This document shows, piece by piece, positions 22,898-63,514 of a stretch of DNA of 64,000 nucleotides. Below the pieces are notes generated by a model. It had not been told where the DNA came from and made no database searches. It saw nothing but the letters and a program-made list of their open reading frames with translations. How positions within the stretch are numbered: the stretch's first letter is position 1; each line of letters begins with the position of its first letter. The stretch is taken from sequence record PQ015379.1; one strand, written 5' to 3'. Made by a program: the position numbers and the translations under genes.

Positions 22898-23305
22898 ATG
22901 CCATACCCTCAGAAACTAATTCTGACCAAACACCAACGCGAAGTTCTGCTGCATCGGATTTCGCACCTGTCGCAATTGAGCGCCGAAGAAATTGAAGAGC
23001 TTTTCGGCTGCGCTGAAAGCGACGACCCGCTCAACGTCGCAGCGCTATGCACCGCGCTGGAAACCTACGACGAACTGTTTACCCGGTGTGCAGGCGGCCA
23101 GTTGATCGCTATCACGGTCGAAACGCGGGAACAGGCGGAAGCGCTAGCGGAAGCCTTGGAGGGTTCAACCTTCTTTGCAACGCGTATGAAAGGTGACGGC
23201 GTTTACGTCCACGCAGCAAAAGCCGTGGCTGAACTTTTATCCACGGTTCTAGATCGTGAAGTCGAGCCGCACATAGACCCGCGCACGTCGCGAAACTCGG
23301 TCTGA
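22898..23305 (+). CDS. hypothetical protein
   Basis: GGAG RBS. Confidence 0.75.
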   Translation: MPYPQKLILTKHQREVLLHRISHLSQLSAEEIEELFGCAESDDPLNVAALCTALETYDELFTRCAGGQLIAITVETREQAEALAEALEGSTFFATRMKGDGVYVHAAKAVAELLSTVLDREVEPHIDPRTSRNSV

Positions 23306-23319
23306 CAGGTAAACCCGTT

Positions 23320-23341
23320 TGCGCATCTAGAACGGTGCGCA
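23320..23341. promoter_or_regulatory. dyad operator TGCGCA-N10-TGCGCA
   Basis: TGCGCATCTAGAACGGTGCGCA, identical to 28834-28855; intergenic. Confidence 0.75.
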
Positions 23342-23380
23342 ATCTGGTTGCACTGGAAAACCACACACGGAGAAACGACC

Positions 23381-23659
23381 ATGGCCCGCACAAAGGCGCC
23401 TGCTATCGCGACCCCTGAAAACCTCGACCCGGCGCTGACGCAAATCATTGTCGTGGACTTCGGGGAATGGGGCCGGGGCGAAACCTTGGAGGAAGCACTT
23501 TCCAAGATTCCCCCGAAAGGCCGTCGCAAACTGGAATCGTACATGCAGGTTTGGCACATCGTGCCCGGAACCTACATTGGCGACGACGGAATCTTCTACA
23601 ACAACGATCCGGCGTTGCAGATTCGCCCGGTACTGAACGAAACCCGGCGCACAAAGTAG
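23381..23659 (+). CDS. hypothetical protein
   Basis: GGAG RBS. Confidence 0.75.
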   Translation: MARTKAPAIATPENLDPALTQIIVVDFGEWGRGETLEEALSKIPPKGRRKLESYMQVWHIVPGTYIGDDGIFYNNDPALQIRPVLNETRRTK

Positions 23660-23689
23660 TTGACACCCCGGCGCCTGTAATGGCATTCT
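23660..23689 (+). promoter_or_regulatory. sigma70-type promoter P4
   Basis: TTGACA-18 nt-CATTCT with extended TG. Confidence 0.75.
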
Positions 23690-23724
23690 GAAATCCAATC
23701 GGCAACCACGCCGACATAGTTTGA

Positions 23725-23747
23725 CACTCACACATTAAAGGAAGTTT
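23725..23747 (+). promoter_or_regulatory. leader box (copy 4)
   Basis: CACTCACACATTAAAGGAAGTTT after the TCGGC/GCCGA hairpin. Confidence 0.85.
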
Positions 23748-23751
23748 GATC

Positions 23752-25281
23752 ATGACCAAGACCACTACCCACACCGCTCAAGCTCTGCTGGTTGCCGCTG
23801 TAAAAACTCTGAACGGCGTTATTCGCGATGCCAAAAAGGCAGGCGTAACCGTTCCGGGTCTGGCTACCGAAGTTGGCGACGGTATCAATCTGCGCGACCT
23901 GAAAACCTACCTGAAGGAATTCGAAGCCAATCAGGCCAGCGCCAAAACCCCGGCTGAAAAAGCCCCGGTGAAAACCCCGGCCCCGAAAGCCGAAACCAAG
24001 CCAGCGGCCAAAGCTGAACCGGTTGAACTGAAAAGCTCGGCCATCGTCGAAGCTGGCACCGTGAAAATCGGTCGCAACACCGAAACCGTTCTGCGCGTTC
24101 GCAGCATCGGCGGCGTGCGCACCGCAGTAACCGACAAGGGCACCCGTATTGCTGCTGCCGATCTGGAATTCAACAATCGCGGCGCCCTGCGTGTGAAGCT
24201 GGATTGCGAATCGAAGTACAACGGCAAAGCCGCTGCCCCGGCCCCGAAAGCTGACACCAAAGCCCCGGCCACCAAACCGGCCAGCGGCAAGAAACAAACC
24301 GCTTCGGAAGACTTCGAAGAAGAGCCAGCAGCAAAGGCGCCTGCCGCTAAAGCCGGTTCCGACCGCGTGTTCCCTGTGCGCACGCTGAACCTGAAAAAGT
24401 CGCCAATGCTGACCGCTGCGACCTACGACCGCAACACCAAAACCCTGACCGTTACCCTCAAGGATAACGCCGTATGGGCTTACGAAGGTGTGGCACTGAG
24501 CGAGGTTCGCGCTTTCGAACAGGCTTCGCAGCCGTGGAAACACTTCTCGGCGCACATCGCGAACGACAAGAAAGGCCACATGGTGAAAAACCACGGCGCG
24601 GCCAAAGCTGCCCAAACCGCTGGCGACAAACCAGCAGCAAAACCGGCTGCCAAGGCCCCGGCTGCAAAGCCTGCTGAAAAACCTGCTGCATCGGCTATCA
24701 GCACTTCGCGCCTGCGTTCCGAAGGTTTCAAGGATGGCCGCACCACTGAACAGGTGCTGAACATTTCCAAGAACAAGGAAACCGGCGAGCGCTTCGTGAA
24801 CACCGTTAGCGGCAAGAAAATTCCGCTGGCGTTCATCATCGAATCGAAAGGCAAGTTCCGCGTTTCCGATCTGGCCGGTATCAGTGCCGCTGTAAACCCG
24901 GCAAAGCCTGCTGCAAAGGCCGCTGCAAAGCCTGCTGAAAACACCCGTAAGGCCACGGCTGCAAAGCCTGCTGCACAGGTGAACGGCAAGGCCCCGAAAG
25001 TGAATTTCGCGGCTGGTGAAGGCAAGGGCAGCACCAAAGCCAAAGTGGTTTCGGAAAAGCCTACCCGCGCCGCTGTAAAGGAACACGGTGTTCGCGTGAT
25101 CCTGAACGGTCGCAAAGAAAAGATCGTTGACGTGCTGCGCATCGTCACCCGTGGCGACACCCTGACCGCTGTATCGTCTGCCGATGGTCACAAGGGCCTG
25201 CCGTTCGATCTGATCATGTCCTTTGACGGTCAACCGACCTACACCGGCAAAGTTTCTGCCGACCTGTTCAACGCCCTGTGA
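23752..25281 (+). CDS. histone H1/AlgP-like KPAA-repeat protein with a central KTSC domain and three related beta modules
   Basis: KPAA/AKAP linkers; KTSC-like SPMLTAATYDRNTKTLTVTLKDNAVWAYEGV...F..ASQPWKHF. Confidence 0.75.
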   Translation: MTKTTTHTAQALLVAAVKTLNGVIRDAKKAGVTVPGLATEVGDGINLRDLKTYLKEFEANQASAKTPAEKAPVKTPAPKAETKPAAKAEPVELKSSAIVEAGTVKIGRNTETVLRVRSIGGVRTAVTDKGTRIAAADLEFNNRGALRVKLDCESKYNGKAAAPAPKADTKAPATKPASGKKQTASEDFEEEPAAKAPAAKAGSDRVFPVRTLNLKKSPMLTAATYDRNTKTLTVTLKDNAVWAYEGVALSEVRAFEQASQPWKHFSAHIANDKKGHMVKNHGAAKAAQTAGDKPAAKPAAKAPAAKPAEKPAASAISTSRLRSEGFKDGRTTEQVLNISKNKETGERFVNTVSGKKIPLAFIIESKGKFRVSDLAGISAAVNPAKPAAKAAAKPAENTRKATAAKPAAQVNGKAPKVNFAAGEGKGSTKAKVVSEKPTRAAVKEHGVRVILNGRKEKIVDVLRIVTRGDTLTAVSSADGHKGLPFDLIMSFDGQPTYTGKVSADLFNAL

Positions 25282-25303
25282 TGGCAGGGCGCTGTACCTC
25301 TAA

Positions 25304-25337
25304 ACCCCCGGCGTAGAAATACAAAGGGGGTAATTTT
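25304..25337 (+). terminator. putative terminator
   Basis: ACCCCC...GGGGGT then AATTTTT; a second hairpin covers the stop codon (25272-25291). Confidence 0.55.
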
Positions 25338-25375
25338 TCGCCCCCAGTTTTTCCATTAGCACGGAGGGATTTCTA

Positions 25376-26005
25376 ATGGAACATTTAATCGGCTTCAAAG
25401 GCGTCATGCTGCTTATCGGGCTGGGCATTGTTTTGTGCCTCGCCGTTTTGTGGCGGATTACCGCTAACGAAAAGCGATCTGCGCCCGAAAAGCTGGCAAC
25501 TTTCGACGTGTCGGATTCGCCCATTGCGCAGGCCGAAAGTTTCTGGACTTCGGCCAAGCAAGATTTGCCGGTGCGTGATATCGCGTTTTCCCGCGAAGAG
25601 CGTGAACTGGCAAGGCAGGCCGCGAACGTTCTTCAGGCTGTGGCTGATTCTGGCCCGACCGAAACTGTAAATGAAGACGTAGCACCGAAACCGAAGTTCG
25701 ATTATCCGAACTACGAAGGTTTTCCGTGCGAAGGCACTTCGTTTGACGATTTCGAAATCTCGATGCGCAGCCACGGTTTCGTGGTGCGGTTCGATATGAA
25801 AGCTCAACAGGTGCACGTTTTCTACGCGCCGCCCAAATCGCGCAATCCGATGGATGTGCTGCGCCGCCTGTATCGTGCGCCGCTGGAAATTTTCCCGTCG
25901 AATTTGTTGCACGAAGAGGGCCGCAAGCGCACCGCCCTTTGGGCCATGCGTAAATTCAAGTCGGAAGAGAAATTGCCCGAGTTGGAAAACTTTACCTACC
26001 TGTGA
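25376..26005 (+). CDS. N-terminally membrane-anchored hypothetical protein
   Basis: Hydrophobic N-terminal helix; GGAGGG RBS. Confidence 0.75.
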   Translation: MEHLIGFKGVMLLIGLGIVLCLAVLWRITANEKRSAPEKLATFDVSDSPIAQAESFWTSAKQDLPVRDIAFSREERELARQAANVLQAVADSGPTETVNEDVAPKPKFDYPNYEGFPCEGTSFDDFEISMRSHGFVVRFDMKAQQVHVFYAPPKSRNPMDVLRRLYRAPLEIFPSNLLHEEGRKRTALWAMRKFKSEEKLPELENFTYL

Positions 26006-52613: not shown

Positions 52614-52919
52614 ATGCGTCCGTTGACCATCGTTAAAACCAAAGGGCCGGGTCGCCAATATTGGATCGCCCACAACGTAACGCGTCGTGAAGCCCGCGTG
52701 ATGAACGTTGACGGTCCCGGTGTGCACCTGTTCAGCGGTTACTGGTACGCTGGATTTGGGCTGAAACGTGATTGGGATTGGCACTGGCGTATGCGTACCG
52801 ATTTCCGCCACCACGATGCGTTCGGCAAAGTGGCGCCGGTCCCGAAAAAGCGCGCCGATTACAAAGTGGTGGCCCGTGGCACGCGTAACTCCTATCTCGT
52901 ACGGAAACTGATGCGATGA
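52614..52919 (+). CDS. basic hypothetical protein
   Basis: Packed ORF. Confidence 0.7.
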   Translation: MRPLTIVKTKGPGRQYWIAHNVTRREARVMNVDGPGVHLFSGYWYAGFGLKRDWDWHWRMRTDFRHHDAFGKVAPVPKKRADYKVVARGTRNSYLVRKLMR

Positions 52920-53626
52920 AAGAACAACAATTGCCGACCACGTTCACCTCCGAAGAGGTGGCCCGCATTCTGGACGCGCTGTTCGCCCAGCACCCGCAAA
53001 AAATTGGGGACAATGAAAACCCCGAGTGGCGCACCAATCACACGCTGGGTCGTCGTCTGGTGCGTCTGGCGGAAGACGGGGCGCGCCTCGATTTTCTGCA
53101 AACGCAATCGAAACTTTCGTACACCGGCCTGAGCATTCAAACGCAAGGTGGCCGTACCGAAATTATGTGGCACCACCAGCGTTTCGAACCACAAGAAAAT
53201 CTGCGTCGTGCCATCGATTTGGCGCGTGAGAAATTTCCGGAAGGTCAGTCGAAAATTTCCCCGCCCGGTGCTCGCTTTGTATATGGGCGTGCGCCGGTTC
53301 AGCCGACCGATCCGGAAAACGTGCCGGGGCGTGAGTGGTATGGCCCGAACAAGCTGCCAGCGTGGCACGACAAAACCACCGATCTGGTTTACCGGATGGT
53401 GAGCGAACAGTCGTGTGCCTCGGTTCACGAAATGCAGCGCGTGTACGCCGATACCGACCTGCACGAATGGGGCCACATGGATTCGCTTGACCACATCGAA
53501 ATGATCATGCGCATCGAAGAAGAATTCGGATTGGAAATTCCCGACGAAGTTTCCTACACGTTCCGTACCATCAACCAAATCGTCGAGTACGTCAAACAAC
53601 AGGAATACCAACGTGACCCGCGTTAA
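52916..53626 (+). CDS. unknown N-terminal domain fused to an acyl carrier protein domain
   Basis: C-terminal MDSLDHIEMIMRIEEEFGLEIPDE....RTINQIVEYV with the phosphopantetheine Ser. Confidence 0.85.
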   Translation: MKEQQLPTTFTSEEVARILDALFAQHPQKIGDNENPEWRTNHTLGRRLVRLAEDGARLDFLQTQSKLSYTGLSIQTQGGRTEIMWHHQRFEPQENLRRAIDLAREKFPEGQSKISPPGARFVYGRAPVQPTDPENVPGREWYGPNKLPAWHDKTTDLVYRMVSEQSCASVHEMQRVYADTDLHEWGHMDSLDHIEMIMRIEEEFGLEIPDEVSYTFRTINQIVEYVKQQEYQRDPR

Positions 53627-53885
53627 TCTCGAAGCCGTCCAAAAACGTGTCAACCAAGTGATCGAACAGCACTTCAACATGGCCGCCGGTTGCCGCCCTG
53701 CCTCGGTTGAAAACCACTCCGATATTTTCGCCGATTTGGGCGGTGATTCGCTCGACATGATCGAAATCGTCATGAGCCTCGAAGAGGAATTCGAAACCGA
53801 AATCGACGACGATCCGGCGATGCTGTGGCGCAAACCTGAAGACGCCGCGAAGTACATTCACGATCGCCTGTACGGTTCCAACTGA
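53613..53885 (+). CDS. acyl carrier protein
   Basis: DLGGDSLDMIEIVMSLEEEFETEIDDD. Confidence 0.9.
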   Translation: MTRVNLEAVQKRVNQVIEQHFNMAAGCRPASVENHSDIFADLGGDSLDMIEIVMSLEEEFETEIDDDPAMLWRKPEDAAKYIHDRLYGSN

Positions 53886-63484: not shown

Positions 63485-63514
63485 TTGACACGGCAACCCG
63501 ACGAATGGTAGTGT
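63485..63514 (+). promoter_or_regulatory. sigma70-type promoter P7
   Basis: TTGACA-18 nt-TAGTGT with extended TG. Confidence 0.75.

Follow-up and report, generated by a model that had tools for sequence, protein, structure and literature searches.

Within a 64,000-nucleotide window of sequence record PQ015379.1, the genome of the jumbo phage Pseudomonas phage HRDY3 (313,683 bp, from pond water), we analysed the gene for XDJ15321.1, a protein of 509 amino acids. Modelling suggests five small folded domains strung on four flexible Ala/Lys/Pro-rich spacers in a beads-on-a-string arrangement. Our favoured explanation, which we hold with about as much confidence as doubt, is that XDJ15321.1 would be an abundant architectural protein that binds nucleic acid multivalently and non-specifically. 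The preliminary description, made from the nucleotide sequence, had proposed a multivalent nucleic-acid-binding protein and called it 'histone-like'; the first reading is in keeping with a modular, multivalent protein in which every segment is basic, whereas the label did not survive. Positions are those of the window (record position minus 248,000), and features are collected in Table 1. Over 5 kb around the gene, the sequence matched the HRDY3 record at 100% identity. A literature search found no paper mentioning HRDY3.

The open reading frame (ORF) on the plus strand extends from 23746 or 23752 to 25281, depending on which of two possible starts is used. Translation probably starts from the ATG at 23752, given the AAGGAAG element 7 nt upstream, the identical coding sequence (CDS) in GenBank and the matching N termini of all relatives. 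Ala, Lys and Pro make up 17.7%, 12.2% and 5.9% of the residues, so the 509-residue Lys/Ala/Pro-rich ORF first noted at 23752–25281 stands as described. The protein has 86 Lys and Arg against 50 Asp and Glu and an isoelectric point (pI) of 10.0, and its basic character is shared by linkers and folded domains alike (pI 9.2–10.6 for every segment). An antisense ORF of 501 aa (23728..25233, minus strand) has a low-complexity translation and is a shadow of the plus-strand codon bias, not a gene, since homology, the Pfam match and the confident fold all lie on the plus strand.

An AlphaFold2 model built from 33 aligned family members placed five confident folded domains (predicted local distance difference test (pLDDT) 85–94; the first at residues 7–65, the others at residues 91–158, 203–280, 314–379 and 434–509) between four segments with pLDDT below 50 (residues 66–90, 159–202, 281–313 and 380–433). 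The predicted template modelling score (pTM) of the whole protein was 0.25, from which the domains would be independent beads. Their order, an N-terminal helical domain, beta module A, a KTSC domain and beta modules A′ and A″, all separated by linkers, matches that proposed in the preliminary description. Apart from KTSC, Pfam returned no family above threshold for XDJ15321.1 (Caudo_TAP, at E 0.075, fell below it), and NCBIfam returned none at E up to 1. Among PHROGs only phrog_3292 and phrog_8113 matched; both are of unknown function and both were matched through the KTSC region.

The central domain is a KTSC domain. Pfam PF13619 matched residues 217–271 (nt 24400–24564) at E 4.8e-10 with 39.5 bits against a gathering cut-off of 25, the alignment spanning profile positions 2–56 of 58. 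The modelled domain (pLDDT 91–94) superimposed on the KTSC structures 7x8c (template modelling (TM) score 0.90, root-mean-square deviation 1.5 Å) and 4rgi (TM 0.91) in Foldseek. The KTSC family has a central aromatic-x-Tyr motif. In XDJ15321.1, residues 242–244 read W-A-Y, and neither Y225 nor Y244 varies across 33 family sequences. Profile and fold thus bear out the KTSC-like domain that had been proposed and that was to be checked with a hidden Markov model (HMM). The two structural matches, from Methanolobus vulcani (7x8c) and Yersinia pestis (4rgi, YPO2434), share the fold of the HRDY3 domain; each of them consists of a single domain and has about 70 aa, whereas the HRDY3 KTSC domain is one bead of five, and it is present in most members of the protein family and missing from some. 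The archaeal 7x8c protein is reported as binding single-stranded DNA (Tian et al. 2022, reference 26 of PMC11237433). PMC9503650 describes KTSC as DNA-binding; PMC7824862 (Iyer et al.) takes it to bind RNA and possibly to assist phage translation. The earlier statement that KTSC domains bind nucleic acids therefore has one experimental paper on single-stranded DNA behind it and was too general, the other sources being predictions. By analogy with these proteins, the HRDY3 KTSC domain would bind nucleic acid.

HRDY3 encodes a second KTSC protein, XDJ15098 (357 aa; record 118046–119119, minus strand), that combines KMPT-N (PF20294) with KTSC. Its gene lies between those of the terminase large subunit and the portal, that is, in the DNA-packaging module and a DNA-handling context. 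Further KTSC proteins occur in phage Lu11 (I1TQF8, 616 aa; I1TQJ0, 436 aa).

The three beta modules are copies of one domain. When sub-alignments of the family were compared by hhalign, A matched A′ with a probability of 99% (E 5.5e-18), A matched A″ with 93% (E 2.7e-7) and A′ matched A″ with 85% (E 6.6e-6), against less than 1% for control comparisons of the modules with KTSC or the N-terminal domain. In comparisons within the single protein, the A–A′ similarity alone was detectable, and marginally (z 3.7). AlphaFold2 gave all three the same order of elements, a short helix, six strands and a helix. By these comparisons A, A′ and A″ are homologous, as the preliminary description had suggested. 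Modelled alone, module A reached a pLDDT of 94.8 and a pTM of 0.81. Ten of its residues are invariant in 28 orthologues (E92, G107, R108, R123, T127, G130, E139, R143, G144 and R147), four of them Arg (R108, R123, R143 and R147), and two turn glycines are the sole invariant residues over all module copies.

Searches for relatives of the module outside the family returned little. A Foldseek fold search of the Protein Data Bank (PDB) gave nothing at E up to 0.001; the nearest folds were C-terminal PRC barrels of RimM, led by 3a1p_A (TM 0.56 normalised to the module, E 0.21, probability 0.90; not significant), with 2dyi (TM 0.54), the PRC-barrel protein 3htr (0.50) and 7cq1 (0.48) as further weak neighbours and E values of 0.21–0.97 for the RimM matches. 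The RimM barrels (3a1p, 2dyi and 7cq1) are likewise small, all-beta and of similar size, but the HRDY3 module has flanking helices and no sequence-profile match to them. A profile of 15 module copies found no match among PDB sequences. Pfam gave no PRC match on the whole protein, nor on any of 14 module copies scanned one by one with E values up to 10 admitted, and no family had more than a single copy among its matches. When 1.84 billion representative proteins were searched with a 14-copy profile, 17 came back at E up to 0.001, 14 of them family members; the other three, P0040 (with DUF4116 repeats), P0043 and P0044, were judged spurious as module carriers. Because this search returned family members and spurious matches alone, the module, a predicted small SH3/PRC-like barrel, is private to this family as far as the databases searched go.

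The family itself is confined to one kind of phage. A full-length query with XDJ15321.1 found 32 homologous protein clusters, and the module profile found more divergent members. Members on long contigs always lay on contigs of 170–320 kb, that is, of jumbo phages, and among 50,697 phage records the family occurred in HRDY3 and Lu11 only. On the records searched, the family is specific to Lu11-like jumbo phages. The Lu11 member, gp007 (YP_006382537.1 / I1TQ08), is a hypothetical protein with 40–43% identity to XDJ15321.1 over 99% of the length, the same domain order and syntenic neighbours. It differs in being shorter (463 aa), with shorter linkers and a single exact KPAA, and is likewise uncharacterised. 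A search of the whole HRDY3 record with module and N-terminal HMMs found no paralogue, only the XDJ15321.1 gene.

We fetched 45 proteins and wrote their architectures with N for the N-terminal domain, B for the beta module and K for KTSC. The order N-B-K-B-B of XDJ15321.1 was shared by 26 of them; the others included N-K-B-B (5 proteins), N-B-B-K-B-B (4), N-B-K (2), N-K-B-B-B (1) and N-B-B-K (1), as well as three with modules only and a diverged N terminus. Across the family an N-terminal domain, at least one module, an Ala, Lys and Pro content of 28–37% and a net charge between +10 and +41 were constant, and the whole-protein pI was 9.8–10.1 over 33 relatives. XDJ15321.1 has the features that define the family: an N-terminal helical domain, at least one beta module, a basic character and a place on a jumbo-phage contig. 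Linkers vary in sequence and length (14–118 aa for linker 1) and retain their composition. Module copies number 1 to 4 per member and the position of KTSC shifts, while the charge is kept; multivalency is therefore under selection. Two annotations of relatives do not hold: 'histone H1/5' for P0011 reflects composition only, and 'IS5 family transposase' for P0029 is unsupported by its N-B-K-B-B domain content.

Codon usage points to abundance. The whole HRDY3 genome has 338 ORFs that reach 100 aa (mean effective number of codons (ENC) 44.2, s.d. 6.0); the XDJ15321.1 gene had the 8th lowest value among them, 31.6, about equal to that of the major head protein (32.0). Its codon adaptation index, with the head, sheath and tube genes of HRDY3 as the reference set, ranked 13th of the 338. 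The repetitive linkers are not the cause of the bias, as the folded domains alone gave an ENC of 31.9. Leu is encoded by CTG in 97% of cases (51% in neighbouring genes), Thr by ACC in 86% (50%), and Arg by CGC or CGT only. The strongly biased codons described earlier are thus confirmed, and from a bias level with that of the major head protein, strong expression is a reasonable inference.

The signals around the gene suggest a transcription unit of its own. Upstream lies a promoter-like element (Table 1). Its TTGAC does not vary between the five orthologues whose upstream sequences were aligned, and these also retain two bases of the −10-like hexamer, A at position 2 and T at position 6. We infer promoter function from this conservation. 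The promoter proposed in the preliminary description has this conservation behind it, although a generic sigma-70 scan did not call the element at 23660–23689. TTGACA is scarce on the plus strand of the window: three of its six occurrences are intergenic, and two of these three lie upstream of the XDJ15321.1 gene. A leader of about 55 nt separates the −10-like hexamer from the conserved Shine–Dalgarno site; within it, AGGAAGTT is invariant in five of five aligned orthologue leaders. Orthologues carry a hairpin at the same downstream position as the terminator-like element, with differing stem sequences. With a conserved −35, Shine–Dalgarno site and terminator all its own, the gene looks like a conserved, self-contained transcription unit whose −35 is of the host type. 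Such a unit fits early, strong expression without proving it. HRDY3 encodes its own sigma factor. An Rfam scan of 23300–25500 found no RNA family.

The intergenic TTGACA copies in the window lie at 23660–23665, 23721–23726 and 63485–63490; the second overlaps the leader immediately before the Shine–Dalgarno site.

The 'histone-like' label had been drawn from composition, and nothing further supports it. Pfam at E up to 1 gave no match to a linker-histone winged-helix domain, and the search of PDB folds gave none for any of the five folded domains. Per residue, the linkers have +0.05 to +0.17 charges (net +2 to +9), against +0.25 for a pure KPAA array, and do not amount to the long, densely cationic Lys/Ala/Pro tail of H1/H5. 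XDJ15321.1 also lacks the long contiguous KPAA tandem array of AlgP and PhaF, and neither NCBIfam at E up to 1 nor Pfam found a homologous AlgP or phasin N-terminal domain. Its six exact KPAA are scattered over four linkers of 25–54 aa and are not conserved, relatives having 0–4 copies, and the tandem micro-repeats at the DNA level run to 2–3.4 copies (12-nt repeats at 24661–24688 in linker 3 and, in 3.4 copies, at 24901–24941 in linker 4). What remains of the 'KPAA linkers' of the preliminary description is thus a set of disordered Ala/Lys/Pro-rich linkers with a few scattered, unconserved KPAA.

A partial, compositional resemblance to AlgP and PhaF is nevertheless there: disordered Lys/Ala/Pro-rich segments with KPAA, in proteins of Pseudomonas, the host genus of HRDY3. 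In AlgP, whose ligands are DNA and polyphosphate granules, 25 perfect KPAA fall within 154 aa (PMC9239181); PhaF has 9–22 KPAA, and the disordered region of P. aeruginosa PhaF binds mRNA and activates translation (PMC12818456). KPAA-type segments are thus able to bind polyanions, namely DNA, polyphosphate granules and RNA, but the HRDY3 linkers are less densely charged and have no homology to AlgP or PhaF N-terminal domains beside them.

Taken together, these observations suggest how XDJ15321.1 might work. Binding to nucleic acid would be multivalent and not sequence-specific, with KTSC offering a single-strand or backbone-binding site, the barrels their arginine-rich surfaces, and the mildly cationic linkers weak electrostatic contacts plus reach. 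With KTSC, barrel and linker sites in one molecule, several segments of nucleic acid could be held at once, and the protein might coat, bridge or compact DNA, be it that of the phage or the host nucleoid. Self-association or docking may fall to the N-terminal domain. Nucleic acid as the ligand, DNA rather than RNA, a particular time of expression and a condensing or protective role are proposed parts of this reading. The early timing, nucleoid remodelling and shielding of phage DNA envisaged in the preliminary description went further than the evidence, and remodelling of the host nucleoid and coating of phage DNA are equally compatible with what was observed. Abundant DNA-architectural proteins encoded by phages include phi29 p6, SPO1 TF1 and T4 MotB, which are small and single-domain. 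XDJ15321.1 would resemble them in its proposed mode, as a highly expressed non-specific DNA organiser; it differs in that they are not multi-bead chains, and the searches made gave no relation to them in sequence or fold. A more specific version, in which the beta module would be a new nucleic-acid-binding small barrel and XDJ15321.1 a very abundant phage 'chromatin' protein, made from a host-type promoter and condensing or coating the 300-kb genome or the host nucleoid, strikes us as improbable.

Several points weigh against nucleic-acid binding. The charge density of the linkers is low, and in unrelated multidomain enzymes linkers rich in Ala and Pro also act as inert spacers. The modules lack the conserved aromatics typical of single-strand binders and have no relative of known function, and the domain nearest to them in fold, the PRC barrel of RimM, has a ribosomal protein as its ligand rather than nucleic acid. 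Published views differ on whether KTSC binds DNA or RNA. The genomic context is uninformative: all ten nearest neighbours lack a family in Pfam and in PHROGs, which leaves nothing to argue from by association.

Alternatively, XDJ15321.1 might be a factor directed at RNA or the ribosome: it would attach to mRNA leaders, rRNA or the 30S subunit and, during infection, support translation or redirect it. We regard this as unlikely. KTSC as an RNA-binding domain possibly aiding phage translation (Iyer et al., PMC7824862) would suit such a role, as would the KPAA region of PhaF, which binds mRNA upstream from the Shine–Dalgarno site and is a proposed 30S recruiter (PMC12818456), and the RimM C-terminal domains that are the best fold neighbours of the module bind ribosomal protein S19. 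All three links are weak: the RimM match in Foldseek is not significant (E 0.21), exact KPAA are few and unconserved in relatives, and the sole experimental KTSC result found concerns single-stranded DNA. A profile of the N-terminal domain from five orthologues gave chance-level matches only among PDB sequences (best E 0.23), and the similarity to ribosomal protein S15 found at that level was rejected. A SAP/HeH-like DNA-binding motif in the same domain, supported by no tool, was dropped.

Protein contacts offer another account, in which the barrels and the N-terminal domain would dock partners of a scaffold or hub, the linkers would be inert spacers and the charge would be incidental. PRC barrels act through protein contacts in RimM and in archaeal CdpB proteins, and the linkers conserve composition, not sequence. 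Within linker 4 the motif AENTRK (residues 395–400, nt 24934–24951) keeps E396 and K400 in 90% or more of 33 sequences; both this conserved motif in a disordered linker and the C terminus are typical of docking peptides, and the motif and the C-terminal helix may act as such. Basic pI values in every folded domain and in all relatives would be unusual for a pure protein hub, however, and most members carry KTSC, so that we consider a scaffold improbable as well. The extreme C terminus, within the C-terminal helix at 25255–25278, has A503, F506 and A508 conserved.

A packaged virion protein, an internal head protein travelling with the DNA into the cell, would also be basic, apparently abundant and structural-gene-like in codon usage, and in phage PA5oct a KTSC protein of 70 aa carries the annotation 'structural protein' and two 'virion structural protein' annotations fall within the same long block of small genes, but we think it very unlikely, as the gene lies a long way from the modules for head and packaging, surrounded by some 200 small genes that share one orientation and are of unknown function, is preceded by a −35 hexamer of the host type instead of belonging to an operon with late genes, and encodes an N-terminal domain that is in no other HRDY3 protein and hence is not a common targeting sequence.

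Architectural binding of nucleic acid, our favoured explanation, would be of interest on several counts. About 70% of the genes in such jumbo phages are dark matter, and this one stands out by its head-protein-level codon bias, its own conserved signals, its private repeated domain and the shuffling of modules with charge kept. We know of no means by which jumbo phages outside the nucleus-forming group organise or protect a 300-kb genome. If binding holds, both the binding domain and the type of phage architectural protein that XDJ15321.1 represents would be new, and the protein would be a phage counterpart to the KPAA-type regions of Pseudomonas, whose ligands are DNA, RNA and polyphosphate granules. 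The 'chromatin' version, if true, would mean protein-based DNA organisation or nuclease shielding in the non-nucleus-forming Lu11-like jumbo phages. Should there be no such binding, this would still be a new domain family with clear limits that merits a structure. What is new is an uncharacterised family with an unnamed, lineage-restricted module; its likely kind of action, that of phage architectural or nucleoid-associated proteins, is known.

Table 1. Features of the XDJ15321.1 gene and its flanks, in window coordinates.
Feature	Position	Strand	Residues	Remarks
Promoter-like element	23660..23689	+		−35 TTGACA 23660–23665, 18-nt spacer, weak −10-like CATTCT 23684–23689; putative, from conservation
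Shine–Dalgarno AAGGAAG	23738..23744	+		7 nt before ATG; strong
CDS	23752..25281	+	1–509	XDJ15321.1, 509 aa; 'hypothetical protein' in GenBank
N-terminal helical domain	23752..23946	+	1–65	Helix 7–29, short strand, helix 47–65; pLDDT 84–88
Linker 1	23947..24021	+	66–90	Disordered (pLDDT <50), 72% A+P+K, net +2
Beta module A	24022..24225	+	91–158	Short helix, six strands, helix
Linker 2	24226..24357	+	159–202	Disordered, acidic patch inside, net +2
KTSC domain	24358..24591	+	203–280	Pfam match 217–271
Linker 3	24592..24690	+	281–313	Disordered, 79% A+P+K, net +4
Beta module A′	24691..24888	+	314–379	pLDDT 87–90
Linker 4	24889..25050	+	380–433	Disordered, net +9
Beta module A″	25051..25278	+	434–509	Divergent copy with insertion and conserved C-terminal helix; pLDDT 79–89
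Intrinsic-terminator-like element	25304..25352	+		Two overlapping G+C-rich hairpins, T-run after each

The N-terminal domain was found in the aligned family members and had diverged in three. The gene lies within a block of about 120 kb with some 200 co-oriented, mostly small genes, running from about 244 kb of the record via the origin to 51 kb; nearly all of these genes are annotated hypothetical, and the block includes the entire window. Directly downstream, a gene at 25376–26005 (plus strand) encodes 209 aa with a hydrophobic N-terminal segment, and counterparts of 201–209 aa lie directly or nearly directly downstream of the Lu11, L003 and L005 orthologues, which suggests, by position and length alone, that the synteny of this neighbour is conserved. 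Elsewhere in the block, GenBank annotates two adjacent 'acyl carrier protein' genes at 52916–53885 of the window (record 300916–301885).

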